A stretch of 64,000 bases of DNA from IMG/VR virus record IMGVR_UViG_3300032116_000001, positions 248,001 to 312,000 of that record; one strand, 5' to 3'. Positions within the stretch are counted from its first letter, which is position 1; every line of letters starts with the position of its first letter. The translations under genes were made by a program, and so were the position numbers. The notes below the pieces were generated by a model. The model was given only the letters and a program-made list of their open reading frames with translations, was not told the origin of the DNA and searched no databases. Positions 729 to 63,527 of the stretch are shown one piece after another.

Positions 729-2969
729 ATGGTAGACATTTTGGGTTTAAAAATGACTGCAGATCAAGACAATTTAGTGGAAATCATCGGAGAAGTAACG
801 CGAGTTAATCGCTTTGACAGTGGATACGCCATTGTGACCGTTAAGAAAGGTAATACATCTGTCAAATTAGTGGGAGATATGCCAGGAATTTCCGAGGGTA
901 TGACAATCAAAGCCCTCGCTGAAAAAACTGTACACCAAAAATATGGAGAGCAGTTTAAAGTTCGGGATATTGAGGAAAATGGATTTGCTAATATAGATTC
1001 GCTCATTAAATATTTATCTAGCAACACATTTTCTGGAATAGGGGTTTCCACGGCCAGGTCTATTGTGCAAGTTTTTGGGATGGAAACATTCGATATTTTA
1101 GACAATGATCCAGAAAGACTCTATGATGTCCCAGGCCTATCAGATTCAAAAGTTGACTCTATTATTCAATGTTGGACAGAAAATCGAGAATTTAACAGAA
1201 TTATAGCCGAATTAGTTAAGTATGGCATGACTCCCATGATGGCCAAGAAAGTCTACAAATCGCTTGGCGAATCTGCTTTAGATATGATTCGAGAAAATAT
1301 CTACACATTAACACAAGTTTCGGGAATTGGATTTCTTAAAGCGGATGAAATTGCCCTTAAGTCGGGTGTTAAATTAGATAGTCCACAGCGCGTTGACGCC
1401 GCTGTTTTGTACGTACTCGATCAAGCGTTGTCCAGTGGACATTGTTATTTGCCTCTTCCTGATGTTTCTGAACAATCAGTGGGGCTTCTAAAAGGCAACG
1501 TGAACGCAACACATGTTATGGAGTCTGTCCGAAGGTTGGCTTCGTCATCTCAAATTGTGAACGAAAACCACAAAATATTTCTTTCAGGTATCCGCGAGGC
1601 TGAGAAAAATGTTGCTAGTATGATCACAGATATGTTGTGCTACAAGGGTGATGCCATATACAAAGACCTTGCAGCACTTAGAAAGGATTTAAAACAAATT
1701 GATGTCACAAAAGATATTGTTCTTGCTGAAAAGCAAGAGGAAGCCTTGTTCACGGCCCTTAATTCAAGGGTTGCGATTATAACTGGTGGCCCAGGTGTTG
1801 GTAAAACCACGGTCACGAAAGCCCTTTGTGCGCTTTTCGAAAGGCACAACATGGATTTTTTGCTTTGCGCACCTACGGGCCGCGCTGCAAAAAGGCTTTC
1901 CGAGGCCACAGGATCAGAGGCCTCAACTATACATCGATTGCTAAAAGGGGATTCAACTTCCCAAAAGTTTACTTATCATCAGGGAAATCCACTTTGGGCC
2001 GATGTTGTTGTCATTGATGAATCGTCAATGATGGACATTAGATTGTTTAGATCGATTTTATTTGCAATGGAAAGACACATGAGACTAATTATTGTGGGTG
2101 ATAAAGACCAATTACCATCCGTTGGACCAGGAAATGTATTAAGAGACCTTATTTCATCAGGCAAAGTCCCTTGTGTTAAGTTAGATCAAATATTCAGACA
2201 AAGCAAGGGGAATACTATTATTCCCGTAGCACACGACATTTTGCATGGCGTAGTGCCTGATTTGCCAACACCTATTGAATCTAAAGGAAGAAATTGCGTT
2301 TTAGTTGTCTCTGAAGATCAGGCAACACTGACCGATATGATCATTAAGTTGGTTACTCAATCATTGCCAAAGGCAGGTTTCAAAAATGAAGACATTCAAA
2401 TTCTAACCCCCATGCGTGGTCGGGGACTGGGGGTTGAAGATTTAAATCCACCTCTGCAAGCGGCACTTAATCCGCCATCTGATAAAAAGCCAGAAATCCA
2501 GGATAGAAATCGTATTTTTAGGGTTGGTGATCGCGTTATGCAAATTAAGAATAATTATAAAAAGGGCGATGCGGGGGTTTTCAACGGAGACATAGGTTAT
2601 ATTTCGTCTATTATAAATGACGAAAAAGATGGCACGACAATTTGGGTTAAATACCCCGATATGGAATCGCCAGTTGAGTATTCTCGCGAAGACTGGGATG
2701 AAATTATGCATTGTTTAGCGTGCACTGTTCATAAGTCTCAGGGTGCAGAATATCCTTGCGTAATTTTGGTTCAACATCCTTCCCAATATAATATGCTCCA
2801 ACGCAACTTGATTTACACTGGAGTGACTCGTGCCAAAAAGCTTTGTATTATTGCGGGCACTAAGAAAGCGCTAGAGATAGCAGTGGCAAATGACAGGGAA
2901 ATATCTCGCAATACAACTTTATCTGATCTGTTGAAAAATTTAGTTGACGATACTTCTAGGGCATCATAG
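729..2969 (+). CDS. recD2: RecD2-like SF1B helicase
   Basis: N-terminal HhH repeats (SGIGVSTA, GIGFLKAD), Walker A GGPGVGKT, APTGRAAKRL, IDESSM, VGDKDQLPSVGPG, TVHKSQGAEY, YTGVTRAK. True start may be ATG 753. Ends in TAG. Confidence 0.95.
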   Translation: MVDILGLKMTADQDNLVEIIGEVTRVNRFDSGYAIVTVKKGNTSVKLVGDMPGISEGMTIKALAEKTVHQKYGEQFKVRDIEENGFANIDSLIKYLSSNTFSGIGVSTARSIVQVFGMETFDILDNDPERLYDVPGLSDSKVDSIIQCWTENREFNRIIAELVKYGMTPMMAKKVYKSLGESALDMIRENIYTLTQVSGIGFLKADEIALKSGVKLDSPQRVDAAVLYVLDQALSSGHCYLPLPDVSEQSVGLLKGNVNATHVMESVRRLASSSQIVNENHKIFLSGIREAEKNVASMITDMLCYKGDAIYKDLAALRKDLKQIDVTKDIVLAEKQEEALFTALNSRVAIITGGPGVGKTTVTKALCALFERHNMDFLLCAPTGRAAKRLSEATGSEASTIHRLLKGDSTSQKFTYHQGNPLWADVVVIDESSMMDIRLFRSILFAMERHMRLIIVGDKDQLPSVGPGNVLRDLISSGKVPCVKLDQIFRQSKGNTIIPVAHDILHGVVPDLPTPIESKGRNCVLVVSEDQATLTDMIIKLVTQSLPKAGFKNEDIQILTPMRGRGLGVEDLNPPLQAALNPPSDKKPEIQDRNRIFRVGDRVMQIKNNYKKGDAGVFNGDIGYISSIINDEKDGTTIWVKYPDMESPVEYSREDWDEIMHCLACTVHKSQGAEYPCVILVQHPSQYNMLQRNLIYTGVTRAKKLCIIAGTKKALEIAVANDREISRNTTLSDLLKNLVDDTSRAS

Positions 2970-2973
2970 CAAA

Positions 2974-3004
2974 AGCCCTGCAAATGAAAAACATTTGCAG
3001 GGCT
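2974..3004 (+). terminator. Hairpin after recD2, probable terminator
   Basis: 13-bp stem AGCCCTGCAAATG / CATTTGCAGGGCT followed by a T-rich tract. Confidence 0.7.
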
Positions 3005-3023
3005 GCTTGGTTTTTGTTGAGAA
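2999..3023 (+). promoter_or_regulatory. Putative phage late promoter AGG-N18-AGAA
   Basis: Same spacing recurs at 7 intergenic sites in the window. Confidence 0.6.
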
Positions 3024-3087
3024 TTTTTATTAAGATATTGAGCAACTTTATTGTTCATCGTAACTTCTGAGGAGATTTAAACACAAA

Positions 3088-3930
3088 ATGTTAAGAAAAT
3101 TCGCCGAAACTGCCATGTGGCTTGACCAGCAGGGGCTTTTTGCTGAAGCTGATGTTGTAACTGACGTGCTTCGCAAATATGCTGCTAATGCCCTTTGGGA
3201 GGCAGATGACGAAAATGATGTTGAGGAAATTGACCCATATCATGCTCAGATGTATCACACAATTAAGAATTTAGACTTAAGCGACCCTGAACACCTAGAA
3301 ATTATTCGCGGCGCACATCCAGAACTTGCCGATGCGATAGAAAATTATACACCTGGCCGCAGAATACCAATGAAAGAGCCAATGCGGTATGGACCTCGGA
3401 CAGTAATGTTGCCCCCAGGATTTAAAAGCAATTTTGAAAAAAGACTCCCAGAGTTTTTTATGAGCCCAGATCAACTTCAACGCAACAGAGAGGCTTTTTA
3501 TGACAGACTCGATAAGGCCACACGCAACCGATCTCGTCGTGCAACTTTTGATTTAGATTATGCTTCTACAAGCAAACCTGGATATGAGCGGTCTTACATT
3601 TTTGATCCCGAATTAAATAGTCTAATGTCTTCTGACCCCGATTTTAGACCAAGCGAAAACAATGTTAGTCTTTATGACAAAAGAAAGCTTCGCGCACTTT
3701 TTGATCCAACATTTGATCTTGAGTCACTGGATGAAGACGAAAAATCTGGAAGAGAGCGCTATTTAGGCGTTGATCCCAAGACGGGTGAACCATACTCTCT
3801 TCCTAAGCAGATTGGTTGGGCTCACCGTCAAATTAAGCCCGAAAGTGTTTTAACATTCCGCGGTCACAAAGGCGAAGTCGATCCCGAAACTGGAAAGCGC
3901 AAGCCAAATTACTACTTTAAAGCCAGATAG
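3088..3930 (+). CDS. Hypothetical protein with N-terminal A-x2-LD-x2-G-x3-EAD motif; possible virion/internal protein
   Basis: AMWLDQQGLFAEADVVTDVLRKYA; GAGGAG SD; ends TAG-TAA. Confidence 0.75.
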   Translation: MLRKFAETAMWLDQQGLFAEADVVTDVLRKYAANALWEADDENDVEEIDPYHAQMYHTIKNLDLSDPEHLEIIRGAHPELADAIENYTPGRRIPMKEPMRYGPRTVMLPPGFKSNFEKRLPEFFMSPDQLQRNREAFYDRLDKATRNRSRRATFDLDYASTSKPGYERSYIFDPELNSLMSSDPDFRPSENNVSLYDKRKLRALFDPTFDLESLDEDEKSGRERYLGVDPKTGEPYSLPKQIGWAHRQIKPESVLTFRGHKGEVDPETGKRKPNYYFKAR

Positions 3931-3944
3931 TAAAAGGATACATT

Positions 3945-42573: not shown

Positions 42574-44217
<1,644 letters not shown>

Positions 44218-45178: not shown

Positions 45179-45207
45179 TGCAACAAAACTGCATTATATA
45201 ACGTATA

Positions 45208-45243
45208 ATAATTGGCTCAACTGATTGTAGTTGGGCCAATTAT
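45208..45243. terminator. 15-bp hairpin between the two pilin-like genes
   Basis: ATAATTGGCTCAACT-N6-AGTTGGGCCAATTAT (one G-U pair). Confidence 0.6.
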
Positions 45244-45255
45244 ATTAGAATTATT

Positions 45256-46017: not shown

Positions 46018-46064
46018 ATTTGCAACAGGTGTTGATCAACAAACGTAGAATAATAAAACACTAC

Positions 46065-46422
46065 GGGGGCATAAGGGATCGATTGACGTTGCTATCTTAT
46101 GTTTGCAAGGCGCGGATGTATCCTTGGCCGCGATAACAAAGGATGCAAAAAGTAAATGCGGAAAACAACTTCGCTTTCGCTGCTTAATTAAGCTGGCGCA
46201 TGAACCTGAGACGAGTCTGTAGTTAATGGGGATTGTAAAATAAATCAGACTTAGCTTTGAAACTTCGGCTTGTAGTTGAAAAAGCGATATTAATCAAGCT
46301 GCTGTCAAGAAAGTGCTGGCCTCTAGCCAAAGCTTGACTTAAGATTAATATGAGGAGAACCTTGTGGCGAGCATAGGCTCTGTACGGACAACAAGCGGGT
46401 TCAAATCCCGCTGCCTCCACCA
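46065..46422 (+). ncRNA. ssrA: tmRNA with tag (A)AENNFAFAA
   Basis: 5' GGGGGCA pairs with 3' TGCCTCC-ACCA including the G3-U Ala determinant; T-arm GCGGG-TTCAAAT-CCCGC; resume codon GCG at 46158, TAA at 46185-46187. Confidence 0.95.
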
Positions 46423-46427
46423 ATTTT

Positions 46428-46461
46428 GCAGTATGATTTTTTCATACTGCTTTTATTTTTT
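46428..46461 (+). terminator. Intrinsic terminator after the tmRNA
   Basis: GCAGTATGA-TTTTT-TCATACTGC followed by TTTTATTTTTT. Confidence 0.85.
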
Positions 46462-46617
46462 GGGCGGACTCAACTTAAACATGCCCACAGGGGCTTTTTT
46501 AATAAAATGCTGAGCAGCCAAAAGTGAATAGAATTTTTTAATATCTCCTGCTTTAAATTTGACTCCGCTATAAACTCCAGGCCGACTGCATTCTACATAA
46601 AAAACTTTTCGGTTCAT
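46453..46617 (-). CDS. Small hypothetical protein (54 aa, MNRKVFYVECSRPG...)
   Basis: Manually read ORF that fills the gap between the tmRNA and the tRNAs. Confidence 0.45.
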   Translation of the reverse strand: MNRKVFYVECSRPGVYSGVKFKAGDIKKFYSLLAAQHFIKKAPVGMFKLSPPKK

Positions 46618-46691
46618 ATGATTTTTTTTGGGTTTTTAGTCCCAAATTGCCTACTTTTTATTTAAAAATACGTATTATAATTATATTGCTT

Positions 46692-46762
46692 GCTCCATTA
46701 GCTCAATGGTAGAGCTGGGGTCTCTAAAACCTTGGTCGCGGGTTCGATTCCCGTGTGGAGCA
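46692..46762 (+). tRNA. tRNA with CUA anticodon (amber suppressor) no. 1; CCA not encoded
   Basis: Acceptor GCTCCAT/GTGGAGC, D-arm GCTC..GAGC, anticodon arm GGGGT-CTCTAAA-ACCTT (CTA at 46724-46726), T-arm GCGGG-TTCGATT-CCCGT, A73. Confidence 0.85.
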
Positions 46763-46783
46763 GACAATATATTAAAAATACGC

Positions 46784-46858
46784 GCTCTAGTAACTCAGTG
46801 GTAGAGTGGCCCTCTCTAAAAGGGCATGTCGCGGGTTCGAGTCCCGCCTAGAGCGCCA
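46784..46858 (+). tRNA. tRNA with CUA anticodon (amber suppressor) no. 2
   Basis: Acceptor GCTCTAG/CTAGAGC, D-arm ACTC..GAGT, anticodon arm GCCCT-CTCTAAA-AGGGC (CTA at 46816-46818), T-arm GCGGG-TTCGAGT-CCCGC, G73-CCA. Confidence 0.93.
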
Positions 46859-46882
46859 AGGTTTCTAAAACAATACAGAGTC

Positions 46883-47098
46883 ATGTCAAACAAAAACAAT
46901 TATCAAGAATCTGATCAACCAGACGGCGTATTTCTTAAAGGGGTCATGTATGGGGCCGTCATAAGCATTTTTATTTTAATTATAGCAAAGGCCTTATCAT
47001 TGATTTTGAGCCTAAATATATTTGCCAGCTTGGGCATTTCCGTGCTTGCTATTTTCTTAATTGCTTTATTTTTTGAAATTTTTCGGAAAAGATGCTAA
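46883..47098 (+). CDS. Small membrane protein (2 TM segments)
   Basis: MSNKNNYQ... followed by two hydrophobic helices; start moved downstream of the tRNA. Confidence 0.7.
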   Translation: MSNKNNYQESDQPDGVFLKGVMYGAVISIFILIIAKALSLILSLNIFASLGISVLAIFLIALFFEIFRKRC

Positions 47099-47115
47099 CT
47101 TTTTTGTTGAAAAGC

Positions 47116-47140
47116 AGGTATTAAAGATATAACACGAGAA
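47116..47140 (+). promoter_or_regulatory. Putative late promoter AGG-N18-AGAA upstream of the leader/tRNA-Lys unit
   Basis: Exact spacing match to the six other copies. Confidence 0.5.
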
Positions 47141-47155
47141 TTAAGGTAATTCAAA

Positions 47156-47197
47156 ATGAGACACAACATTCTTAAACGCAAACCTAAACATTACTAG
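47156..47197 (+). CDS. Putative leader peptide MRHNILKRKPKHY-amber
   Basis: TAAGGT SD 8 nt upstream; three AAA codons; TAG stop; lies within alternative hairpins. Confidence 0.6.
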   Translation: MRHNILKRKPKHY

Positions 47198-47314
47198 GTT
47201 CTAGTTCTTTCCGAGGCTAGAATCTGGCCTCTTTGCGTATGTGTCTGCAAATCAAAAGTTATTTTTAACTTTTCCTGCGATCAGAAAACCTTCGGGGCCA
47301 AAACTTTAAATTTT

Positions 47315-47390
47315 GGGTCAGTAGCTCAGTTGGTAGAGCAGCGGTCTTTTAAACCGCGGGTCGCGGGTTCGAGCCCCGCCTGGCCCACCA
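47315..47390 (+). tRNA. tRNA-Lys(UUU)
   Basis: GGGTCAG/CTGGCCC-ACCA; anticodon arm GCGGT-CTTTTAA-ACCGC. Confidence 0.96.
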
Positions 47391-47401
47391 GAATTTTTCA
47401 T

Positions 47402-47477
47402 GGAGGGATAGCTCAGTCGGTAGAGCAGCTGACTCTTAATCAGCATGTCGTGGGTTCGATCCCCACTCCCTTCACCA
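47402..47477 (+). tRNA. tRNA-Lys(CUU)
   Basis: GGAGGGA/TCCCTTC-ACCA; anticodon arm GCTGA-CTCTTAA-TCAGC. Confidence 0.96.
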
Positions 47478-47482
47478 ATATA

Positions 47483-47590
47483 TGGTGTTCTGGTACAAGT
47501 GGATTAACTCTGCGCCACAGGAAAAAGACGATGGAAAAACCCATCCATATTTGCAGAGATGTTCAGGCTCGTCCCCTGATAATTTCATCA
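47483..47590 (+). ncRNA. tRNA-like structured element or pseudo-tRNA
   Basis: D-loop-like AAGTGGATTAA, CTCTGC/GCAGAG stem enclosing a GATGG/CCATC hairpin, T-arm-like TCAGG-CTCGTCC-CCTGA. Confidence 0.35.
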
Positions 47591-47632
47591 AGATTGATTT
47601 ATTTTATTGGGCAAATTAACGGCTCAATTAAA

Positions 47633-47752
47633 AAGGAGGTCTCACCTATGTTGTAGGTCATTCGTCCGCCTTAATCATATTTGTAATTCCATTCACTAAC
47701 TTCGTTCATGGCTTTGCATAGCCCACGATTACAAACAGAAATACAAATATGA
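47633..47752 (+). promoter_or_regulatory. Amber-containing leader (ATG TTG TAG GTC ATT CGT CCG CCT TAA, 47648-47674) and an 11-bp helix over the next start codon
   Basis: AAGGAGG SD at 47633-47639; TCATATTTGTA (47675-47685) is exactly complementary to TACAAATATGA (47742-47752), which contains ATG 47749. Confidence 0.7.
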
Positions 47753-48192
47753 AAAACACACTTAATAAAAACATAACATCGACGTTCTTTAACTCTCCTG
47801 ATGGCTACGAAAAGCTTCGGTCTAAATGGAGTGAAATTGTAAATTCTAACTCAGAATACAAACTTACTGCAGCAGATTACATGCTTTATGCAATTCTTCG
47901 TGGAAAAGATTGGAGAAAAGGATTTACAATGCCCAAAAAGCAAGACCCATCTTGGGAGTACGAGACTCCAATTATTGTTTCAAACTCAATGTATACTTCT
48001 AGTACAATCCTGAGATCAATGGCTTGTCCAGTATCAAAGAGTCAAAAATTTTGGGCTGATAATTTCGGGGATATTTTAAATCTCGAAACTGCAAAATCTA
48101 TTTCTAAATTTTATTATCGTCTTGATAGAAGGGAAAATATACTTAAGCAAAGCGCTTATATTTTGGAGGATTCTTCCGAGAATGTGGCCTAA
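47749..48192 (+). CDS. Hypothetical phage protein, first gene of the leader-controlled operon
   Basis: 147 aa; LTAADYMLYAILRGKDWRKGFT; no clear SD of its own. Confidence 0.8.
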   Translation: MKNTLNKNITSTFFNSPDGYEKLRSKWSEIVNSNSEYKLTAADYMLYAILRGKDWRKGFTMPKKQDPSWEYETPIIVSNSMYTSSTILRSMACPVSKSQKFWADNFGDILNLETAKSISKFYYRLDRRENILKQSAYILEDSSENVA

Positions 48193-48775
48193 AATTGTAA
48201 TAAATGAAGATTTGCAAGTGGTTGAGACTTTGGAAACTTATGGATCACGAAGTCTGGCTCAGGCATTCGACCACTATCAAGCGCCTCGTATTAGGGATGG
48301 CGTCGAGCTTGTAACCCTTGCTGACCCAGAGACCTGGGTGCCAGCAGACTATGATAAACAATCCGAAAATTGGACCGAAAGGTCTGTTATTTTAATGTCA
48401 AAGCTATATAAAGCTTTTGAAGAAAAAATTAAAATGGTTTCTGATTATTACGTGCTCACAATGGGAGAAAGCGGAGAAAGGTTTCAACGAATTTATGCTA
48501 TTGGCGACGACCATATCACGGTTGAATATTCTTCTCGTGGATGTTTGAGGGGGTGCTGTCCCGATGAAGAATATTCTTATGATATTCCTATACAGGCACT
48601 CTGGGACACCAGCGTTATTGACAATATGAAAACCGAAAAAGAAAAAGCCGCGCAAGAGAAAAAAGCACAAGAGATTAAAGATGCCCGCGACCGCGAAAGA
48701 CAACGTAAAAAAGAACGAGAAGAAAATGAACTTAAAGAATATCATCGGCTTATGGAAAAATACAAAGGAAACTAA
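48182..48775 (+). CDS. Hypothetical protein with charged C-terminal helix
   Basis: GGAGG upstream of ATG 48182; CxxCC; ends ELKEYHRLMEKY. Confidence 0.75.
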   Translation: MWPKIVINEDLQVVETLETYGSRSLAQAFDHYQAPRIRDGVELVTLADPETWVPADYDKQSENWTERSVILMSKLYKAFEEKIKMVSDYYVLTMGESGERFQRIYAIGDDHITVEYSSRGCLRGCCPDEEYSYDIPIQALWDTSVIDNMKTEKEKAAQEKKAQEIKDARDRERQRKKEREENELKEYHRLMEKYKGN

Positions 48776-48776
48776 A

Positions 48777-49502
48777 ATGACTACCGAATACAAACCGCCA
48801 TATGTTGCTCGCCTTGGTGAAGGTTTTTTAAAGCCTTGCAAGTTTAGTGACGGAAAAGTTCACAAGATTAAATATCACTATGTTGATGTCTATGAGGTTA
48901 ATGAGGACTCAGAAACTAAAATAGGAACATACGAGGTTTCCGATTTTAAGTCCCCGCGTGTTGTGTTTCATCCGTTTAGACATGACGGTGAATGGTACGC
49001 ACTAGTAAGTGAAAGCAAAAAAATATTTGTCTATTCATTGCCAGAAATGAAATTATTAGCTGAACTTGAACCACAGGGTTGCATTAAGTTTTTAGAATTT
49101 TATATACCCAGATTTCATCATGTAGTATATAAAGGAGTTGCTTTTACTCTTGTGGACAAAGAAATTGAAGAAGATTATAAGGATAATGAAGCATGGTGCC
49201 ATGCAGATTTTGCTTTTGTAATGGGGTATGACCCGTTCTGTAATTCGCCTAATTACGTAAATATTGTTGATCTTTCAAATATTAAGATCGGAGAAATTAA
49301 ATTTAAGCAAGAATATTGGCATGAATGTCCGCAGTGGCTTGATTTAAATCAAATTGTGCAAATATCCTATTGGGATAAAAGCTTCCCTGCATTTGCAATC
49401 GCCACAGTAGAGTATGCTTCAACGTCAACGGGCTTAAAATGCGGAAACAATGGATGGACTGACGAAACTCTTGGTGCCATAGATAGTGGTGAAAAATCAT
49501 GA
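48777..49502 (+). CDS. Hypothetical beta-rich protein
   Basis: AAGGA SD; ATG 1 nt after the previous stop. Confidence 0.75.
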   Translation: MTTEYKPPYVARLGEGFLKPCKFSDGKVHKIKYHYVDVYEVNEDSETKIGTYEVSDFKSPRVVFHPFRHDGEWYALVSESKKIFVYSLPEMKLLAELEPQGCIKFLEFYIPRFHHVVYKGVAFTLVDKEIEEDYKDNEAWCHADFAFVMGYDPFCNSPNYVNIVDLSNIKIGEIKFKQEYWHECPQWLDLNQIVQISYWDKSFPAFAIATVEYASTSTGLKCGNNGWTDETLGAIDSGEKS

Positions 49503-49825
49503 GCTAGACTACCGCGCCTTATATATATATTTTCGTTAGAAAAGACATTGGCGTAGCGGACCAGATGGTTCAGGCCTGTCATGCTGCGCAAGAATCGGGA
49601 GCTAAATTTGGCTGCCCCGATTCTTGCCACCTTGTTCTTTGCTCGGTTGAAAATACATTTGAATTGGAAAAAATAAGCTATGTTTGCCAAGAGAATGACA
49701 TAAAATTTGTTACTTTTTACGAGCCTGATGACCAGATGGGAGACACTGCAATTTGCACGGAACCAATCTGGGGAGAAAAAAGAAAGGCTTTTAGAAAATT
49801 TAACACATGGAAACCCGTGGTATAA
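49499..49825 (+). CDS. Pth2-like peptidyl-tRNA hydrolase with in-frame TAG at codon 3 (49505-49507)
   Basis: ATG AGC TAG ACT..., then YIFVRKDI...QMVQACHAAQE...HLVLCSVEN..EL...FYEPD....TAICTEP; ATGA overlap with the upstream stop; the ORF-track start at 49565 would remove the conserved VRxD strand. Confidence 0.8.
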
Positions 49826-49853
49826 ATATTGATTTCTTTTCGTAGAATAATTA

Positions 49854-51659
49854 ATGAACATTGTTATTGCTCAATTAGAACTCCGCACGGGCGACCTATA
49901 CGGGAATACTGCGAAAATTATCAACACCGTGGAAGAATCAAGCGACAATTCCGTGATTATATTTCCAGAACTTGCTGTCACTGGGTATAATTGCGGGTCG
50001 CTTTTTGAAAGTGACGACTTTATCAATGACGCCCTTGAGTGTGTGGATCAAATTGTTAAAGCGACTAAGGGCACAAACAAAACTGCTATTTTTGGAGCAC
50101 CGAGATTTGCCACGCCTGATAGAGAACCTAACGGTAACATCAGACTCCACAACAGTGCTATGATCGCAAGAGACGGAAAACTTCTTGCTGTTTACGACAA
50201 GATTTTGTTGGCTAATGATTTTCAGCATGAAGATCGAAAATATTTTATTCCTGGTGAGAATCTATTCACATTCCAGGTTGGCGATCAGGTGGCGGGCGTT
50301 CTTATCTGTGAGGATATCTGGGCACCCGATCATGACCGAAACTTGGTTGCAGAGCTTAAAGCCCTCAATCCTGATCTTTCCATGATCTTTTGCATCAACT
50401 ATAGTTACTACACTTATGAGAAGCATTCAGCTCGTCAAAATTTGCTTTCTAATCTTGCACGAGATCATAAAGTAGGAATTTTTTATGTTAACGCCGTGGG
50501 GGTGGGAGATATTGTTAAGAACTTTATGGTTTATGACGGTAGGTCGATGGTTTATGATGCCTTGGGCAATCTGTTTGACATCCTTCCGTCTTTCGAAGAA
50601 AAAATTATATCTTGCTCCTTAAAAAAGGGGAAAATTTTCAATTGGTTTGACAATGATTGGGATGGAATTGACAAGCGTAATCAAAGGAGATTTCTATATT
50701 CAAAGAATGATAAATACCAGACTATCTGGTGTGCCCTGAAATATGCTTTGCGTCAGTTGATGGACCAAACTGGCATAGAGCGTGCCCAAGTTCACGTTTC
50801 TGGTGGCATAGACAGCGCCGTTGTGGCAGCGCTTTGCGCCAAGGCGCTTGGGCCTGATCGTTGTGTTTTCATTAGTAATCCCTCCCAATATAATGGAGAT
50901 ATTACTAAAAATAATGCTCAGTACATTGCTGACAAGCTCGGGGTCCCCCTGTATTGGATGCCCGTGGGCGATCTTACAAATCATGCCAAGTCGATTTTCC
51001 AAAATGCTTACTTGGAATCTGCAGAAGATGGTTGTCGCATGCCCCTTGCCAGCGAAGAGCTTCCCCAGATGGTGGACACTACATTAGATGCTGTAGGTCG
51101 AACATTGCTTGGCCTGTCAATCTGTCATTATTTTAAATCGGCTATTATTTCCACGGGCAATCACACTGAAAATGTACTTGGATGGTTTACTTTCCATGAC
51201 GTGGGCAGCGTGGGTCTTTTCCAGCCGCTTGGTGACCTGACAAAATCAGAGGTAAATTGCTTGGCGAAATATATCAATGAAATATATGAGGATGAAATCA
51301 TTCCAATCAATCTTTATGATGGAAGCACCAAGCCCATGGCTGAGCTTGCAGACAGTAGCGAAGACCCATTTGATTATCCTCTGTATTCTGGAATTTGTGC
51401 CGAAATTATCCGACGCAGGATGACTGTAAGAGACCTGGAAGAAGCCTATGATAATCACACGTTAACTACTGATTATTTTTGCGAATGCGACCCATACAAT
51501 TATCCCAAGGATGTTTTTGTGTCGGCGGCACGTGATGCCTGGAATCGATCAAAGAGGAGTGTATTTAAGTGCGCACAATCATCCCCAACACTTATTGTTT
51601 CTCCCAGAAGCAGAGGCTTTAGTTCAAGAGAGACAATTTTAAACTACTATAATTCTTAA
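49854..51659 (+). CDS. nadE: Glutamine-dependent NAD+ synthetase
   Basis: Nitrilase-fold FPELAVTGY, YDK..L, ICEDIW; synthetase SGGIDSAV, STGNHTE, LGDLTKSEV, PMAEL. Confidence 0.93.
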   Translation: MNIVIAQLELRTGDLYGNTAKIINTVEESSDNSVIIFPELAVTGYNCGSLFESDDFINDALECVDQIVKATKGTNKTAIFGAPRFATPDREPNGNIRLHNSAMIARDGKLLAVYDKILLANDFQHEDRKYFIPGENLFTFQVGDQVAGVLICEDIWAPDHDRNLVAELKALNPDLSMIFCINYSYYTYEKHSARQNLLSNLARDHKVGIFYVNAVGVGDIVKNFMVYDGRSMVYDALGNLFDILPSFEEKIISCSLKKGKIFNWFDNDWDGIDKRNQRRFLYSKNDKYQTIWCALKYALRQLMDQTGIERAQVHVSGGIDSAVVAALCAKALGPDRCVFISNPSQYNGDITKNNAQYIADKLGVPLYWMPVGDLTNHAKSIFQNAYLESAEDGCRMPLASEELPQMVDTTLDAVGRTLLGLSICHYFKSAIISTGNHTENVLGWFTFHDVGSVGLFQPLGDLTKSEVNCLAKYINEIYEDEIIPINLYDGSTKPMAELADSSEDPFDYPLYSGICAEIIRRRMTVRDLEEAYDNHTLTTDYFCECDPYNYPKDVFVSAARDAWNRSKRSVFKCAQSSPTLIVSPRSRGFSSRETILNYYNS

Positions 51660-51671
51660 GGAGATTTTACA

Positions 51672-52064
51672 ATGACACAAAGAATGAAAGAGCGCAAGAT
51701 TAAGTATATCGAAAAAACCATGGAATATCTAGATATTGAATTTATTTCAGTTTCTGACAAAAATTCTGTTTCTGAAATAATGAATGAGATTGGCTTGCCG
51801 ATGCCAGAAGATGGCCACCGTTTAAGTTTTAGGTATTATCTTTACTGTAGCCCTGGACAACAAGAAATGATATTAAGAGACGGAGGTTTCGAGCGCGGCT
51901 CTTACCCTGCCACAAACACTATGATTGATGAAGTTTTCTTTCATTGTTGTCAAATTTTGCCACAAAAGATATATCAAGACATTTTGGAAAACGAATATAA
52001 AAATAAAATCCACAATTTGATTCTTAAATTTGAAGATATAGAAGAGCGATTAAGAATATTTTAA
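51672..52064 (+). CDS. Hypothetical protein
   Basis: 130-aa ORF with GGAG SD. Confidence 0.7.
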   Translation: MTQRMKERKIKYIEKTMEYLDIEFISVSDKNSVSEIMNEIGLPMPEDGHRLSFRYYLYCSPGQQEMILRDGGFERGSYPATNTMIDEVFFHCCQILPQKIYQDILENEYKNKIHNLILKFEDIEERLRIF

Positions 52065-52079
52065 CATGATACAAATTAT

Positions 52080-52820
52080 ATGATGAACCAATTATTTCAA
52101 AAAGACAAAAACACTTCTGTTAGAGAGCACCCGCTTTCTCTAAATTCAGCAATGGTGCAGGCCGTCCTTGATGGCCGCAAGACGCAGACGCGGCTGATCG
52201 TGAAGATGACCGACTTTGGTAAGCCTGCTCCTGGTCCATGCAATCATACCCAACGAGTGTTTGAATCAGACGGCAAATTCTATCAACAAGATTGTTTTAT
52301 TCCCCCATGCGCTTTGCCTATTTTGGGGCCGCGACATGAAATTTCATGTCCTTACGGCATTCCTGGCGACCGCCTTTGGGTGCGCGAGACGTGGTGTGAG
52401 CTGCGCGTGGGCCACTTCAACGAGCTTGGCCTCCCGCGTGACCTGCTTGTTACTCGTTACGACGACCCGCGTCGCAACGGGGCGGCGTATCGCGCCAATT
52501 GCAGCGCGGAGGGCGAAGAAATCCGCGCCAGCTACGGCTATCGCTGGAAGCCCTCCATCCACATGCCCCGATGGGCCTCAAGACTTACACTTGAAATTGT
52601 AAATGTTCGCGTGGAACGATTGCATGACCTGTCCGAAGCCGACGCTCTTGACGAAGGATGTGACATTAATCTTTTGCCTGACGGTGCGGGAGAAGGTGGT
52701 GAGTTTACCTGCCCAACAGAATGGTTTATGAACTTATGGAATACCAAATACGGTTCGAAGGCATGGGATGATAATCCATGGGTATGGGTTATTGATTTCA
52801 AGCGAACGGAGGATGAATAA
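52080..52820 (+). CDS. ASCH/PUA-like conserved phage protein
   Basis: MVQAVLDGRKTQTR, PYG..GDRLWVRETW, WKPSIHMPRWASRL, VERL.D, NPWVWV. Confidence 0.85.
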   Translation: MMNQLFQKDKNTSVREHPLSLNSAMVQAVLDGRKTQTRLIVKMTDFGKPAPGPCNHTQRVFESDGKFYQQDCFIPPCALPILGPRHEISCPYGIPGDRLWVRETWCELRVGHFNELGLPRDLLVTRYDDPRRNGAAYRANCSAEGEEIRASYGYRWKPSIHMPRWASRLTLEIVNVRVERLHDLSEADALDEGCDINLLPDGAGEGGEFTCPTEWFMNLWNTKYGSKAWDDNPWVWVIDFKRTEDE

Positions 52821-53054
52821 ATGAAAAACGCATATGTTCGGCCCAGAGGGGAACAATGGATTGTGATTTCCGAAGGATGTAAGAGGCCATCAACAGTGCG
52901 TCATACGTTGGCGGACGCTATTAAAATTGGCCGCAGAATTGCCATGAACCGAGGTTGTGAGTTGATTGTCTATCGGGTAGACGGTACGATGCGCTCAAAA
53001 GATAGTTTGGGGACCGACCCATTTCCGCCAATGCCGAGGGATGATGAGAAATGA
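52821..53054 (+). CDS. DUF2188-family protein
   Basis: V.PR...W.V..EG..R.S....T..DAI...R.IA...EL.....DG.....DS.G.DPFPP. Confidence 0.85.
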   Translation: MKNAYVRPRGEQWIVISEGCKRPSTVRHTLADAIKIGRRIAMNRGCELIVYRVDGTMRSKDSLGTDPFPPMPRDDEK

Positions 53055-53347
53055 CAATTCTCTATAAGTCTTACGGACAGCTGGTTTTGTGGGCCAACTG
53101 TGAAGAAATTGGCGGTGATTACTGGCAACATGCTCATATTATTGATGATAGTGAATGGGAACGCTTACTTAATGAAGCGCAAGGGAATAAGGACGTGATT
53201 AGGCCACAAGATATTGATTCTACTGGGCACACAGTGCCGCTTTTAGAAGTTACGGAAGACCTTCTTAGTATAATGTGCGAAAGCGAAGGTGTTGAGTTAA
53301 TTCATATTTGGCCTGATGACCAGGAGGAACAGGATGACATGTTATGA
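53051..53347 (+). CDS. Hypothetical acidic protein
   Basis: ATGA-coupled 98-aa ORF. Confidence 0.7.
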   Translation: MTILYKSYGQLVLWANCEEIGGDYWQHAHIIDDSEWERLLNEAQGNKDVIRPQDIDSTGHTVPLLEVTEDLLSIMCESEGVELIHIWPDDQEEQDDML

Positions 53348-53552
53348 GGCTTTTGACGCCCTGCTGGCAGGCAAGCGAGTGCGTCGAGCAGCGTGGACTG
53401 AAGCGACTTCATGGAAGATGTCGTCCAAGCAGGATGATTACCCAACTCTTATACAAATGTGGGTGGGTAATACCGTAATCACTACGTATGTCACCGAGGA
53501 AGACCTCACTGCTACCGACTGGGAAGTTGTACCCAACCAAGAAAATAAATAA
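53334..53552 (+). CDS. DUF2829 / Tad2-like (Thoeris anti-defence 2-like) protein
   Basis: MTCYEAFDALLAGKRVRRAAW...EDLTATDWEVV; AGGAGG SD. Confidence 0.75.
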   Translation: MTCYEAFDALLAGKRVRRAAWTEATSWKMSSKQDDYPTLIQMWVGNTVITTYVTEEDLTATDWEVVPNQENK

Positions 53553-53557
53553 AAACA

Positions 53558-54007
53558 ATGACACAAACCATATATTTAGCTGGCCCTATTGGGGGATTCG
53601 CCAAATGCGCCGATTGGCGCAAAGAAGCAGAACAAGCCTTAGAAAATCATAATTTAATTGGCCTCAACCCTCTTCGTCATAAAGAGCAAATGCTCATGAA
53701 CACAAGCGCCATGACTGAACTAAATGATACGATTCACGCCCTTGAAAAGATTATCATGAGACGAGACGCTTTAGATATAGAGCAGTCTAGTGGTATGATT
53801 GTATGTTTTCAAGGGGCGGAAAAAGTCAGCGTTGGAACATGTATAGAAGTTGGGATTGCTTATGCACTTAAAAAACCAATTATTCTAGTTATGGACAGGG
53901 GTGTTGGGAACCCACACGATCATGCTATGGTCAGAGAAGCCGCTTGGGCGATAGTCAACGACATTGAAGAAGCAGTGAGGCTTATGGCAAGCTTTCTGAA
54001 TAAATAA
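53558..54007 (+). CDS. Nucleoside 2-deoxyribosyltransferase-like protein
   Basis: IYLAGPI, LNPLR, RD..DI, SVGTCIEVGIAYALKKPI. Confidence 0.85.
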   Translation: MTQTIYLAGPIGGFAKCADWRKEAEQALENHNLIGLNPLRHKEQMLMNTSAMTELNDTIHALEKIIMRRDALDIEQSSGMIVCFQGAEKVSVGTCIEVGIAYALKKPIILVMDRGVGNPHDHAMVREAAWAIVNDIEEAVRLMASFLNK

Positions 54008-54008
54008 C

Positions 54009-54659
54009 ATGAAATTATCACTTAAATCAGATTGGCGAGATTATTACGATCATATGTTTCATATGTTTGGCGATGACCTTGTCGTGTTTGAAAGACTATC
54101 GCGTAGCGGGCCAAACAAAGAGCAACAATTTGATTTTTTAGTAAGTCTGGGACAAAATACTCCTTCTTATGGGAAAATTAGTGATTTGCTAGACGAAACG
54201 AAAGACGATACGCAAAAATTTGTTATTTATGATGATTTAGACGCTCATGCTGGAGATGGGAAAAGGCTTGTAGATTATCAACAAGCCTTAAAAGAGCCTG
54301 TTGATTCTTTTGCATCTTCATATATCCCGCGCCAACAAGAAAATCCGATTACTTTACGATGGCTTCAGGTCGGATATCAACCATTTCTTCTTGAATATTC
54401 TAGCGATGATGACTGGAGATCAAATTGCGGAGATGTTAATATCAAAATTCTCCAAGTCAGCGATCTTATTGGCCCAATAAGAAAAGTGCCTTACCCTTTG
54501 TGGGCGATAGATTATATACCACTAAACAATGGAGAGGTTGTGGCTATTGACTTTAATATTTCCCCTGGACTAAGGGGCACTGGTGTAGAAGAGCATATGA
54601 CAGCTTCAGAGGTCGTTCACGCAATTACTTATGTAATGGAGATTCTTTTAAAAAAATAA
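54009..54659 (+). CDS. Hypothetical protein with ATP-grasp-like C-terminus
   Basis: DWRSNCG, WAIDY, AIDFNISPGL. Confidence 0.6.
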   Translation: MKLSLKSDWRDYYDHMFHMFGDDLVVFERLSRSGPNKEQQFDFLVSLGQNTPSYGKISDLLDETKDDTQKFVIYDDLDAHAGDGKRLVDYQQALKEPVDSFASSYIPRQQENPITLRWLQVGYQPFLLEYSSDDDWRSNCGDVNIKILQVSDLIGPIRKVPYPLWAIDYIPLNNGEVVAIDFNISPGLRGTGVEEHMTASEVVHAITYVMEILLKK

Positions 54660-54714
54660 ATGAAAACAACACTATAATAAATTACAAACCAATTTCAAAC
54701 GAGGCGAATCAAAA

Positions 54715-55413
54715 TTGACAGCAGAACTTAAAATCCCATCACATATCCCCGATCATTGGCCCCGAGAGAAAAAAATTGAAAACTTAATGGGAATTGCTTT
54801 TTATTTATCCAAGCACTGGAAATCAGTAGACAATGGCCTTGTGACTATGGATAGTGATGATATTTATCAAGTGGCTGCCATGGCAATTGTAAAGGCCGTA
54901 GATACATACAACCCTTCACACGGGGCTAAGCTTTCCACATGGGCCACGTCCCAGGCTAAACTTTCTATCAGAGACGCTGTAAGAAAAAATTCTCATGCCA
55001 CCAGAAGCATGCAGGAAAAAGGCAACAATATACGATGGGTTAGCTTTGATCAGTGTGTATCAGATGGCACAGGAGACATGATATCAATAGAAGATATTAT
55101 ATCAGAATCACAATCTTTTTCATCGGTTGATATCATCGATTTGTTACATAAAGACTGGGAAAGACAAAAGATTGAAGAATATTTACAGCGGCTAAACAAA
55201 CGTGAACAAGAAGTCATACGTGAATACATTTCTGGAAAATCTATATCTTCTATTGCAAAATCTATTGACGTTTGCGACTCAAGGGTTTATCAAATTATTG
55301 ACACTTCGATTAAGAAAATGCAAAATTATGATCGGATAGAGAGAAAAAAAGAAGAAATATCATTAGATAAACTTGAGAAGCATTATAATAATTTAGGAAG
55401 AGAAGATTTATGA
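54715..55413 (+). CDS. Sigma-70 family sigma factor (FliA/WhiG-like)
   Basis: Region 2 DDIYQVA..AIVKAVDTYNPSHGAKLSTWA; region 4 LNKREQEVI...SISSIA....SRVYQI. Confidence 0.88.
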   Translation: MTAELKIPSHIPDHWPREKKIENLMGIAFYLSKHWKSVDNGLVTMDSDDIYQVAAMAIVKAVDTYNPSHGAKLSTWATSQAKLSIRDAVRKNSHATRSMQEKGNNIRWVSFDQCVSDGTGDMISIEDIISESQSFSSVDIIDLLHKDWERQKIEEYLQRLNKREQEVIREYISGKSISSIAKSIDVCDSRVYQIIDTSIKKMQNYDRIERKKEEISLDKLEKHYNNLGREDL

Positions 55414-55723: not shown

Positions 55724-56275
55724 ATGAATCATCCAAACATACTTGTAAATTTTTTTGGCGGCCCAGCAATTGGAAAAAGCAATTGCGCAAGATCGCTTTG
55801 TTCATTATTGAGTGAATTCGGTATATCAAACGAATATGTTCCCGAATTTGCAAAAAAATTAACTTGGAAATCTGACTTAAACACCAGATCAAACCAAGTG
55901 TTTGTTACAGCAACACAATTTGACGACATACTAACTGTTTATGATAAGGTGTCCGTAACGGTCACTGATGGCCCCTTAATTCTGGGCATGGTTTATCCAG
56001 GCCCATGCTGCACTCCCGTTTGGAAAGAACATGTTATTGAAATGCATAATTATTTCAACAACATCAACATATTTATTCAAAGAAATAATGAATGGTATCA
56101 GCCAATTGGCAGAACCCAAACACTTGAAGAATGCATAAGTGCCGATCAAAGAACTTTAGACTTCTTGAATCAATATCAAATTGATTATGTCACCATCCCA
56201 GCTGACAGACACATGTCTAGTCGTGTCTTTGATGTTTTAATGGAGAAAATAAAAAATGAGAAAACACACACATAA
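55724..56275 (+). CDS. P-loop NTPase, NadR/AAA_28-like
   Basis: NFFGGPAIGKS, EFAK.L.W, TDGPL, GRTQTLEE. Confidence 0.8.
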   Translation: MNHPNILVNFFGGPAIGKSNCARSLCSLLSEFGISNEYVPEFAKKLTWKSDLNTRSNQVFVTATQFDDILTVYDKVSVTVTDGPLILGMVYPGPCCTPVWKEHVIEMHNYFNNINIFIQRNNEWYQPIGRTQTLEECISADQRTLDFLNQYQIDYVTIPADRHMSSRVFDVLMEKIKNEKTHT

Positions 56276-56750
56276 ATACATTGAAGTGATCGTGAACGGC
56301 AAAGTTATTAGTCGATTTACTCGCCCAGAAGCTTACAAAAGTATAAATGAAGCTCGCGACAATTATTCAAGTATTTACAAGAAATGGAAAAGAGATGACT
56401 CTGATTATCCATGTCTTAATTGCGATGGGGCAGGCACTTATCATAAGTTTGAAGATAGAGACATTATAGAGGGCTACAAACTGGCTCCGCTTTATACATG
56501 TAAATCGTGCAGTGGCTCTGGCCGCGGCCCCAAAGAGATGTTTAAGGCATACTATGACGCTGAAAAACAAAAGATTAAAGCGCAACAACAAAAATTTGAC
56601 AAAGACTTAGATTCTTTTATGGAAGCGATACAAGTTCTTAGCCCCGAACAAATTTTAACACTAAATAAAATGCTAGGAAATGTGTGTCCAATTTATGAAA
56701 AAAATGCCCCAATTAAGAAAATTAAGGTGAGAAAAAATGGAATGGCGTAG
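56256..56750 (+). CDS. Protein with DnaJ-type zinc-finger repeats
   Basis: CLNCDGAG and CKSCSGSG; ends in TAG. Confidence 0.75.
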   Translation: MRKHTHKYIEVIVNGKVISRFTRPEAYKSINEARDNYSSIYKKWKRDDSDYPCLNCDGAGTYHKFEDRDIIEGYKLAPLYTCKSCSGSGRGPKEMFKAYYDAEKQKIKAQQQKFDKDLDSFMEAIQVLSPEQILTLNKMLGNVCPIYEKNAPIKKIKVRKNGMA

Positions 56751-57225
56751 TGGTGATATGCTGCAGGTAGCAAGGGAAGAAGAATGCGAAATTATTGCCT
56801 TCACTGCAAACTCCGTGCTTAAAAGCATCAACGGAAGTCAAGCTTTAGTTATGGGCGGCGGCGCAGCTAAGCGTGTTCGAGATGCTTTTCCTGGTATTGA
56901 TGTTCAGCTTGCTGAAAAAATCATAGAGTCAAGAAGTATTGACAACAATAATTCAGCAGACTATTATGTTGTTGCATCAAAAACTAATGGTTTGTGGGTT
57001 GCCGCAGTTCAAGTAAAAAGACATTGGAAAGATGATGGAGACTGGAAACTTACTGAAACAAGCCTCAAAACCTTGGCCAGACATTTGTCAAAAAATCCGA
57101 ACCGTAAATGTGTTCTTAATTGCCCGTTAATTGGGCTTGGTGGCTTTTCTGACCGCATTGATGATGTGAAACAGATGGTAGAGGACACACTTAAAGACGC
57201 CAATGTTTTCGTTTGTATAATTTGA
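56737..57225 (+). CDS. Macro-domain-like (ADP-ribose-binding) protein
   Basis: GDM, FTANS...LVMGGGAAK, VKRHWKD, PLIGLGG. Confidence 0.8.
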   Translation: MEWRSGDMLQVAREEECEIIAFTANSVLKSINGSQALVMGGGAAKRVRDAFPGIDVQLAEKIIESRSIDNNNSADYYVVASKTNGLWVAAVQVKRHWKDDGDWKLTETSLKTLARHLSKNPNRKCVLNCPLIGLGGFSDRIDDVKQMVEDTLKDANVFVCII

Positions 57226-60112: not shown

Positions 60113-60137
60113 GACATCCAAGACTAATACATAAAAA

Positions 60138-60689: not shown

Positions 60690-60697
60690 TAATTACA

Positions 60698-61369: not shown

Positions 61370-61424
61370 TTTAGCCCACCACGTGGATTTGTTAAATTAT
61401 TGCTTTTATGATCGTATAATAAAT

Positions 61425-62428: not shown

Positions 62429-62439
62429 TATATAATGCT

Positions 62440-62646
62440 ATGTTAAGATTGTTTAAATCATTATTTAAGCGCGAAAAAATCTATCACAAATCTGAGCCCC
62501 TAGTTGAAATCAACCCATCTGATGTTCAAGAGCCATGTGTAAGAATCACCGTAGGGAGAAAATCAATACTCTTATCAGGTGGACAGGCCAGAAGACTGTG
62601 GGGCAAACTTGGATCGAACTTGGAAAAAATTACTCCTGATAAATGA
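62440..62646 (+). CDS. Hypothetical protein
   Basis: 68-aa ORF, ATGA-coupled to the next gene. Confidence 0.6.
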   Translation: MLRLFKSLFKREKIYHKSEPLVEINPSDVQEPCVRITVGRKSILLSGGQARRLWGKLGSNLEKITPDK

Positions 62647-63092
62647 GCTATCAAGATCGATTGCTTAACATAGAACTTGTTCCAGAATCATCATGGTGCA
62701 ATAATGTTCGATCTCATGTCAAGAAATCTTCATGGGACCGAATTAGAAAACAAGTTTACAAAGATTATCAGCATAAATGTGGCATATGCAACTCAAAAGG
62801 CGCTCTTGCCGCCCATGAAATATGGAATTATGATGATTCGTCTTCAAAGCAGACACTAATTGGTATGATTGCGCTTTGTGGCTTGTGTCATCATGTTAAG
62901 CACATTGGATTCGCTGAAGTTTTAGCCAATCAGGGAAAACTAAACTTTCAGCGTGTTGTTAATCATTACTGCAAAATCAACAAATGCACAAATGACGAAT
63001 TTTGGGCCGACAGAGAAGAGGCATTTTATGAATGGTCGAAAAGGTCTAGAAACACATGGTCGGTTGATATATCGTATATAGAGCGATATTAA
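62643..63092 (+). CDS. HNH-like Zn-binding nuclease family protein
   Basis: ELVP.S.W..NVR, CGIC, HEIW.Y, LCGLCH.VKH.G. Confidence 0.8.
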   Translation: MSYQDRLLNIELVPESSWCNNVRSHVKKSSWDRIRKQVYKDYQHKCGICNSKGALAAHEIWNYDDSSSKQTLIGMIALCGLCHHVKHIGFAEVLANQGKLNFQRVVNHYCKINKCTNDEFWADREEAFYEWSKRSRNTWSVDISYIERY

Positions 63093-63146
63093 TTTGCGAA
63101 GAATTCTTGCGCTAATTTCAGATGAATTAATATCGTATTAAAGATA

Positions 63147-63527
63147 ATGCTATTTGATTCTAATCCACAACATGCTGAAAGATACAATGTTGTTTCGATA
63201 ATTTTGAATAACCAGCTTTGGTCTTTTGCCGAAGTTCCAGGTGTTAAAATCATGTCGCCTACTTTTCCGATTAAACACTTTGGCACCGCAACAAATAAAT
63301 CTTGTCCGTCTCCTGTGATTAGATATGCTGTAGATTCAGATTTAAACATCTGGATCGGCAACGATGAAAATGGCATCATGTTTTGCGATGATCAACATCA
63401 TGTTTTGAGCATCCTATTCTTGTACAATCCTTTGGCCTGGGCCTCTGTTTGCGAACAAATTGGAAACAATGCTGTACAAGAAATTATTAATTCATGCGAT
63501 TGGAGCATGACTGACGGTATAGAATGA
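63147..63527 (+). CDS. Hypothetical protein
   Basis: 126-aa ORF. Confidence 0.6.
   Translation: MLFDSNPQHAERYNVVSIILNNQLWSFAEVPGVKIMSPTFPIKHFGTATNKSCPSPVIRYAVDSDLNIWIGNDENGIMFCDDQHHVLSILFLYNPLAWASVCEQIGNNAVQEIINSCDWSMTDGIE

Follow-up and report, generated by a model that had tools for sequence, protein, structure and literature searches.

Second stop codons close behind TAG in a jumbo phage with two tRNA(CUA) genes

This study concerns a 64,000-nucleotide stretch of phage DNA from the IMG/VR record IMGVR_UViG_3300032116_000001 (hereafter the window) and the stop codons that end its genes, in particular TAG. The window covers bases 248001-312000 of one 378,848-bp contig with a G+C content of 40.6%, and the virus record is estimated to be complete; its source phage is labelled G000, and other G numbers denote the IMG/VR genomes with which it was compared. 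The phage carries two intact, tandemly duplicated transfer RNA (tRNA) genes with the anticodon CUA, tRNA(CUA), which are putative amber suppressors. Our analysis revealed that the TAG stops of G000 have a close in-frame second stop approximately three times more often than expected. Selection for fail-safe stops behind TAG, driven by the phage's own tRNA(CUA) pair, is a plausible if tentative reading of the sequence, and ordinary stop usage joined to a small-sample coincidence, with the tRNA(CUA) genes leaving no imprint, seems to us about as likely. Coordinates are those of the window unless called genome positions.

Second stops behind TAG

Genes were called with an in-house script, in which open reading frames (ORFs) of at least 50 codons received a codon-usage log-odds score, trained on ORFs of at least 300 codons, and were chosen greedily without overlap. 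The stop position of an ORF is independent of the choice of start, and the main results were repeated on high-scoring genes only. Three apparent TAG genes of G000 ended inside tRNA genes; these were removed and the statistics redone under a strict filter, which admits no ORF touching a tRNA gene or with one 60 bases or less downstream. The filter leaves 27 TAG genes, and expectations were obtained from dinucleotide shuffles of the 60 bases downstream.

A second stop lay within two codons in 10/27 TAG genes, compared with 3.3 in the shuffles (P<0.002), and within six codons in 15/27, compared with 8.8 (P=0.013). Among the genes ending in TAA or TGA, the corresponding counts were 35/344 (p<0.001 against the TAG genes under the strict filter) and 100/344 (p=0.005), and the 28 TAG genes kept by an earlier tRNA filter also differed from the TAA/TGA genes at two codons (p=0.0006). 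The other two frames behind the same TAG genes yielded 5/54 within two codons (p=0.004) and 22/54 within six (p=0.15), and the TAG genes of related phages 23/190 within two codons (p=0.003 against G000). When only high-scoring G000 genes were considered, 7/18 had a stop within two codons and 2.3 were expected (P=0.003). The TAA/TGA genes of G000 fell slightly below their own shuffle expectation (35 within two codons against 43), and therefore the null is not biased upward.

The pattern was also present beyond the window. The 24 TAG genes located there included 8 with a stop within two codons against 3.0 expected (P=0.007; p=0.003 against the TAA/TGA genes), and 12 within six codons against 7.9 (P=0.057; p=0.03 against the TAA/TGA genes). 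A threshold-free Mann-Whitney comparison gave p=0.007 overall and 0.03 outside the window.

The excess was sharpest at exactly +2 codons (7/28), as would also be expected if the TAG stops were young, that is, if recent nonsense mutations had arisen just upstream of ancestral TAA or TGA stops and left these behind as apparent backups without any selection. The orthologues of most G000 TAG genes do end in TAA or TGA. The same process should have acted in the relatives, where TAG is the rarest or second-rarest stop, yet no excess is seen in them, and C-terminal alignments gave no indication that the G000 proteins are systematically one or two residues shorter. We regard this origin as very improbable.

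The filtering brought a separate observation. ORFs that run into tRNA genes stop at the TAG of U8-A9-G10 and meet a second in-frame TAG four codons on, in the D-arm, as at genome positions 18056-18142, 24531-24613 and 45048-45123. In phages rich in tRNA genes, this pattern is an artefact inherent to all stop-codon statistics.

The tRNA(CUA) pair

The genes for tRNA(CUA) lie in a short cluster of RNA genes within a larger accessory block, with the following features.

46065..46422, plus strand: transfer-messenger RNA (tmRNA) gene with the tag AENNFAFAA (ARAGORN-type call; Rfam RF00023, 91 bits)
46428-46450, plus strand: terminator-like hairpin behind the tmRNA gene
46692..46762, plus strand: tRNA(CUA) copy 1 (RF00005, 60.5 bits; G1-C72, A73, loop CU-CUA-AA, no encoded CCA)
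46784..46858, plus strand: tRNA(CUA) copy 2 (RF00005, 69 bits; G73, encoded CCA)
47315..47477, plus strand: two tRNA-Lys genes (UUU, CUU) of the same cluster
45256..55409, plus strand: accessory block of about 10 kb, without orthologues in six related phages

The two copies, whose RF00005 bit scores come from Infernal, are 83% identical, and both fold as a cloverleaf and share the anticodon loop CU-CUA-AA, with A36-A37-A38. The pair is situated 270 bases downstream of the tmRNA gene and upstream of the two tRNA-Lys genes. In addition to these RNA genes, the accessory block holds genes for an NAD synthase and a sigma factor; in the relative G001, about 1.8 kb separates its two flanks, GroEL and the gene at 55410.

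ARAGORN labels the pair as pyrrolysine tRNA (tRNA-Pyl), an identity that we rejected: both copies fit the general tRNA model from end to end and possess the canonical D-loop GG and the T-loop TTCGA. tRNA-Pyl has a short D-loop without GG and a variable loop of three bases. The label arises because the anticodon is CUA, and for nothing more. In a comparison with 263 phage tRNAs, the best matches of the pair (79-84% identity) were scattered across His, Lys, Glu, Pro and Trp; the closest tRNAs belong to several isoacceptors and so point to no single parent or inserted amino acid. More than 119 IMG/VR contigs match the tRNA(CUA) anticodon-loop and T-arm pattern, none of them with more than 80% identity.

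Genetic code

G000 uses the standard code; TAG is read as a stop, and there is no gene that needs TAG to be decoded. Coding density decreased from 0.886 under code 11 to 0.872 with TAG as sense, with a gain in no 20-kb bin; in G021, the positive control of this test, it rose from 0.54 to 0.78. Recoding of TAG (code 15) was rejected for G000, with no density gain and no genuine fusion across TAG: the four candidate fusions (genome 40352, 68361, 111321 and 227982) correspond in relatives either to distinct genes lying in different frames or to true ends. Long open extensions were not enriched behind TAG, with 5/28 compared with 59/350 for other stops. No match to PF00472, PF03462 or PF00749, searched as marks of RF1/RF2 (release factors 1 and 2) or GlnRS/GluRS genes, was obtained in the whole G000 genome, and control genomes were positive in 10/14 cases for the release factor families and in 14/14 for PF00749. 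Under the standard code and without in-frame TAG, the tRNAs would therefore meet phage UAG only at gene ends.

One open stretch deserves mention here. Behind the TAG of a 2282-residue gene, genome positions 200584-200895 contain five more in-frame TAGs and 102 codons without TAA or TGA; this stretch scores negatively for coding, shares bases with the following gene in a different frame and is probably an off-frame effect.

The phage might also be at an early stage on the way to recoding TAG as an amino acid (code 15), a state compatible both with selection for fail-safe stops and with coincidence. Such a route is proposed by Borges et al. (bioRxiv 10.1101/2021.08.26.457843), whose standard-code example has acquired a suppressor tRNA and has 2.7% of its genes ending in the corresponding stop. 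TAG is the rarest stop of G000, its tRNA pair occupies a lineage-specific block, consistent with acquisition, and tRNA(CUA) in other contigs is often linked to recoding, as in G021. Against an intermediate stand the lack of in-frame TAG, of recoding in any of the relatives (0/6) and of an RF2 gene, and the 27 genes that depend on TAG as their stop; moreover, the direction of evolution cannot be read from one genome. We consider this state rather unlikely.

Frequency of TAG

With ORFs ending in tRNA genes removed, the stops of G000 were TAA in 75.7%, TGA in 16.9% and TAG in 7.4% (28/378) of genes. We compared the TAG share with off-frame and intergenic trinucleotide shares and with the relatives; a mononucleotide-composition null was discarded as uninformative, because TAG is under-used as a stop almost everywhere. 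In the six relatives without tRNA(CUA), TAG accounted for 17.5, 9.3, 11.0, 12.7, 12.7 and 11.5% of stops, or 12.6% when pooled (p=0.002 against G000), with a wide spread among them of 9.3-17.5%. The TAG:TGA ratio of G000 (0.44) is in the middle of the range of the relatives (0.28-0.94), and its core orthologues include 7-12 TAG stops, compared with 6-9 in three relatives (G007, G011 and G012) and 15-24 in the other three. TGA is low in G000 as well, and the outstanding trait is therefore a strong preference for TAA. The rarity of TAG appears marginal and not specific, following a general TAA preference common to the relatives.

Furthermore, TAG made up 11.9, 8.3, 17.9 and 37.1% of stops in unrelated standard-code phages with tRNA(CUA), and carriage of such a tRNA alone thus does not go together with TAG avoidance. 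In bacteria TAG averages about 20% of stops, and E. coli K-12 has 7.4%. The base following TAG in G000 was T in 46% and A in 14% of cases, compared with 36 and 31% in the relatives; the direction would fit a poor context for suppression, and the difference was not significant (p=0.30 and 0.075).

The first-pass annotation of the window saw the rarity of TAG as fitting a genome adapted to tolerate amber suppression. A tie between this rarity and the suppressor tRNAs was not borne out, given the low TGA, a TAG:TGA ratio inside the family range, core orthologues similar to those of three of six relatives, and other carriers with 8-37% TAG. The genome-wide comparison with relatives that it proposed gave a divided answer: the TAG share is ordinary, and the backup distances are not as expected. 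Ordinary stop usage would account for the first part: most AT-rich phages and bacteria use TAG less than either other stop, and both the core orthologues of three relatives and the share in E. coli equal what is seen here. Stops are also frequent in the AT-rich DNA behind genes, and terminators, ribosome-binding regions and overlapping genes could help to produce close ones.

Comparison with other phages

Six unrelated IMG/VR contigs were taken by the anticodon-loop and T-arm pattern of tRNA(CUA). One of them, G021, is TAG-recoded. Three (G025, G029 and G027) combine the standard code with tRNA(CUA), as does, less clearly, G045 (60% G+C); ARAGORN found no tRNA(CUA) in G030. In the first three together, 39/81 TAG genes had a stop within six codons and 25.0 were expected (P=0.0017; p=0.016 against other stops and p=0.004 against off-frames), and high-scoring genes yielded 27/46 against 15.8. 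G045 had 17 against 12.4 within six codons (P=0.077) and 12/76 against 4.2 within two. In the six genomes without tRNA(CUA), which are few and mostly of one family, the counts after TAG met expectation, with 74 against 72.8 within six codons and 27 against 25.8 within two. When TAG genes were set against genes with other stops, the odds ratio for having a second stop within six codons was about 2.06 in the four clear carriers of tRNA(CUA) and 0.82 in genomes that lack it; the difference has a z of about 3.6, or 2.6 when G000 was left out. Overall, close stops after TAG were in excess in four or five genomes with tRNA(CUA) and in 0/6 without, and with the results from short loci considered in the Discussion the replication is mixed.

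Several side observations concern recoding among the contigs compared. G021 (IMGVR_UViG_3300021431_000004) is a complete 130-kb phage with one tRNA(CUA), in which 53/71 TAG-ended ORFs stay open for at least 50 codons; it is clearly TAG-recoded. G045, with 208 kb, has 37-39% of its genes ending in TAG. Near-tandem or TAG-TAG stops are numerous in it, long open extensions are over-represented behind TAG (36/83 against 36/130), and the phage may be partly recoded. Among short tRNA(CUA) loci that pass a coverage-gain test, TAG-ended ORFs open for at least 50 codons amount to 38-50%, compared with about 20% for other stops; the test misses recoding with one or two in-frame TAGs per gene, because both halves cover the same bases.

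TAG genes of the window

According to our calls, the 73 genes of the window end in TAA (55), TGA (15) and TAG (3). The three TAG genes are the same as those named in the first-pass annotation, and each does have a second stop close behind, 6, 1 and 2 codons later.

729..2969, plus strand: recD2-type helicase gene, TAG 2967-2969 (Pfam AAA_19, AAA_30, HHH_RecD2, SH3_13, UvrD_C_2)
2974..3004, plus strand: terminator-like hairpin behind recD2 (13-bp stem, -26.4 kcal/mol, z=-3.8, followed by a T-rich run)
3088..3933, plus strand: gene without assigned function, TAG 3928-3930 directly followed by TAA 3931-3933 (own calls)
56256..56756, plus strand: gene ending TAG-TGG-TGA, TAG 56748-56750, TGA 56754-56756 (own calls)

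Behind the recD2 TAG, five sense codons precede a TGA at 2985-2987. The gene at 3088-3930 has no Pfam or PHROG match, and the next gene starts at 3945; the gene at 56256-56750 has a weak PHROG match to an anti-termination Q-like family. Other TAG-ended ORFs of at least 40 codons in the window lie inside called genes or have a negative coding score. At 3/73, the TAG share does not depart significantly from that elsewhere in the genome (binomial P=0.14). Given the 29% of TAA/TGA genes (100/344) with a stop within six codons, which is itself in line with coincidence, three backups out of three have a probability of about 0.025, and the window alone proves little.

Source phage and neighbouring genes

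G000 encodes a DnaE-type polymerase, GyrB, RecJ, PhoH/PIN, RecD2, GroEL, NAD synthase and DNA ligase, and ARAGORN detected 34 tRNA genes and one tmRNA gene; from this gene content and RNA complement in a 379-kb genome, it is a jumbo phage. Its IMG/VR relatives have 122/383 G000 proteins in common at about 50% identity, with DnaE 54-64% identical. Six were compared as whole genomes, with tRNA(CUA) in 0/6 and the standard code in 6/6. Closer relatives were not found in phage records, IMG/VR or metagenome contigs, where the sole match of the metagenome scan was the source contig itself, Ga0315903_10000009; the nearest available relatives are about 50-60% identical at the protein level. G006 and G012 agree in all their matches to G000 proteins and in the identities of these; they probably represent one phage that was assembled twice and should enter comparisons a single time.

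Inside the accessory block, a glutamine-dependent NAD synthase (CN_hydrolase and NAD_synthase domains) is encoded at 49854-51659 and a sigma-70 family sigma factor at 54715-55413. Directly upstream of the tmRNA gene, at 44303-46017, are two adjacent genes with products that start with the prokaryotic N-terminal methylation motif (type IV pilin-like). A mini-ORF of 13 codons at 47157-47198 (MRHNILKRKPKHY), rich in Lys and Arg and preceded by a Shine-Dalgarno-like sequence, ends in TAG shortly before the tRNA-Lys pair; it might encode a leader peptide or have arisen by chance.

NNFAFAA tmRNA tags are encoded in many Bacillota and Armatimonadota genomes. Among genomes with this tag, the best nucleotide matches of the tmRNA are Armatimonadota/Fimbriimonadales metagenome-assembled genomes, with about 77% identity over 90-120 bases, a likeness that offers a weak lead to the host. 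A general linkage between tmRNA and suppressor tRNAs was not seen: in the relative G007 a tmRNA occurs in the absence of tRNA(CUA), and tmRNA is missing from four phages with tRNA(CUA). Elsewhere in the genome, the ARAGORN calls for tRNA-Gln(UUG), tRNA-Trp and tRNA-Thr(UGU), at genome positions 44114-44199, 312947-313033 and 24531-24613, are over-long (83-87 bases) and may contain introns or insertions.

Discussion

In this study, we found an excess of close second stops behind TAG in a standard-code jumbo phage with two tRNA(CUA) genes. If selection for fail-safe stops is the cause, the two tRNAs would compete with host RF1 during infection and make UAG leaky, so that phage genes still ending in UAG would be extended up to the next stop; selection would then preferentially have kept or created TAG stops with a fail-safe stop close behind. 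The adaptation would be partial, as nearly half of the TAG genes appear unprotected. We infer the expression, charging and suppressor activity of the pair in G000 from its genes.

Several points weigh against this explanation. First, the sample is small (27 genes), the two-codon threshold was picked after the data had been seen, and the gene calls come from a crude in-house caller. Second, only TAA or TGA backups would halt a fully suppressed ribosome, and when these alone are counted the signal weakens: the excess falls to 8/28 within two codons (p=0.007), the Mann-Whitney test gives p=0.09 overall and 0.26 outside the window, and outside the window 9 genes against 6.4 have such a stop within six codons (P=0.17). 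Third, 12/27 TAG genes have no stop within six codons, 13/28 have no TAA or TGA within ten, and in five genes read-through would add between 51 and more than 300 codons, with three of the extensions entering the following gene. Among the unprotected TAG genes, those ending at genome positions 112469 and 227982 would be joined by read-through to their downstream neighbours. Nor has TAG been purged, since it ends several large conserved genes of G000 for which relatives use TAA. In the window, the backup TGA of recD2 sits in the stem-loop of the terminator-like hairpin at 2974-3004, and both stops of the 56256 gene lie inside codons of an overlapping gene in another frame (56737-57225).

The comparison with other phages adds to these points. 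G025, G029 and G027 together show no excess within two codons (13/81 against 9.4 expected), and in 61-90 short loci, taken from other contigs around their tRNA(CUA) genes, close stops behind TAG were depleted, with 13/42 for TAG against 218/400 among ORFs whose next stop falls within 20 codons. The ORFs of these loci were called by length only and the set is confounded by hidden recoding, with TAG-ended ORFs open for more than 40 codons in 39% of cases against 21%; it lends no support to the backup excess.

Much of this also speaks for ordinary stop usage and a small-sample coincidence: two of the three window backups occur in constrained sequence, the tests without TAG backups are weak, replication at the locus level is negative, and bacteria in general are reported, with Ho and Hurst (2019) cited for it, to have no fail-safe stops. 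Against coincidence, four different controls within G000 agree, with P of about 0.001-0.01, and the pattern persists outside the window; moreover, the excess is absent in the six genomes without tRNA(CUA) and seen at six codons in three other carriers. That each TAG has a close backup, as noted earlier for the window, fails outside it, and the excess stands genome-wide and outside the window. Similarly, the suggestion of a genome adapted to tolerate amber suppression keeps in its favour the two tRNA(CUA) genes and the backup excess, and has lost the rarity of TAG and the universal backup. Nothing came to light that would indicate retention of UAG for regulation.

Going further, standard-code phages with amber-suppressor tRNAs might use these as a tool for taking over the host, with their own UAG genes shielded, and the excess would then be the first footprint of self-protection. 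Host proteins with a UAG stop would become longer or end up in non-stop complexes, and the phage's own tmRNA, encoded just upstream of the tRNA pair, may clear the stalled ribosomes. We think this broader proposal improbable as it stands.

Parts of the picture are already known, namely standard-code phages with suppressor tRNAs and a depleted matching stop, and fail-safe stops in yeasts and ciliates. Like the suppressor-tRNA phages of Borges et al., G000 has the standard code, a suppressor-type tRNA and the matching stop as the least used one. Their example concerns gut Agate phages, which have a suppressor of TGA and recoded phages as very close relatives, whereas G000 is a 379-kb phage from an environmental metagenome with a TAG pair and no recoded relative found; the TAG depletion of G000 does not appear specific, as TGA is scarce as well. 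In the passages retrieved from that work, second stops following the suppressible codon are not mentioned. With code 15 phages (TAG to glutamine; Lak megaphages and crAss-like phages) G000 shares a phage-encoded tRNA(CUA), a large genome and many tRNAs; those phages are characterized by TAG codons within late or structural genes, a coding density that is low under code 11 and, in some cases, RF2, and none of the three was found in G000.

The tandem stops of yeasts and stop-reassigned ciliates are likewise reported (Liang 2005; Adachi and Cavalcanti 2009) to show in-frame stops enriched in the first codons after a leaky stop. Those organisms are eukaryotes, whereas in G000 the leak would come from the phage's own tRNAs and affect TAG only. 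In E. coli, where UAG is as rare (7.4% of genes), the two highly expressed genes with this stop, atpE and sucB, have a second stop directly or one codon behind (PMC8954436); unlike in G000, that pattern is anecdotal, without a general excess.

Our literature searches turned up no earlier description of a TAG-specific fail-safe excess in tRNA(CUA) phages. Such an excess would be new, and the present evidence is suggestive and not conclusive. The backup-stop statistic is simple and needs nothing but sequence, so that thousands of phage genomes are within its reach; should the pattern not hold at that scale, the window would merely come from an AT-rich phage whose stop usage is ordinary. The current model regards phages that combine the standard code with suppressor tRNAs as a stepping stone to recoding. 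A fail-safe excess confined to tRNA(CUA) phages, if true, would indirectly indicate that these tRNAs act during infection, and that their activity is costly enough to shape the gene ends of the phage itself. It would also provide a counter-example to the view that there is no selection for additional stops in prokaryotic genomes.

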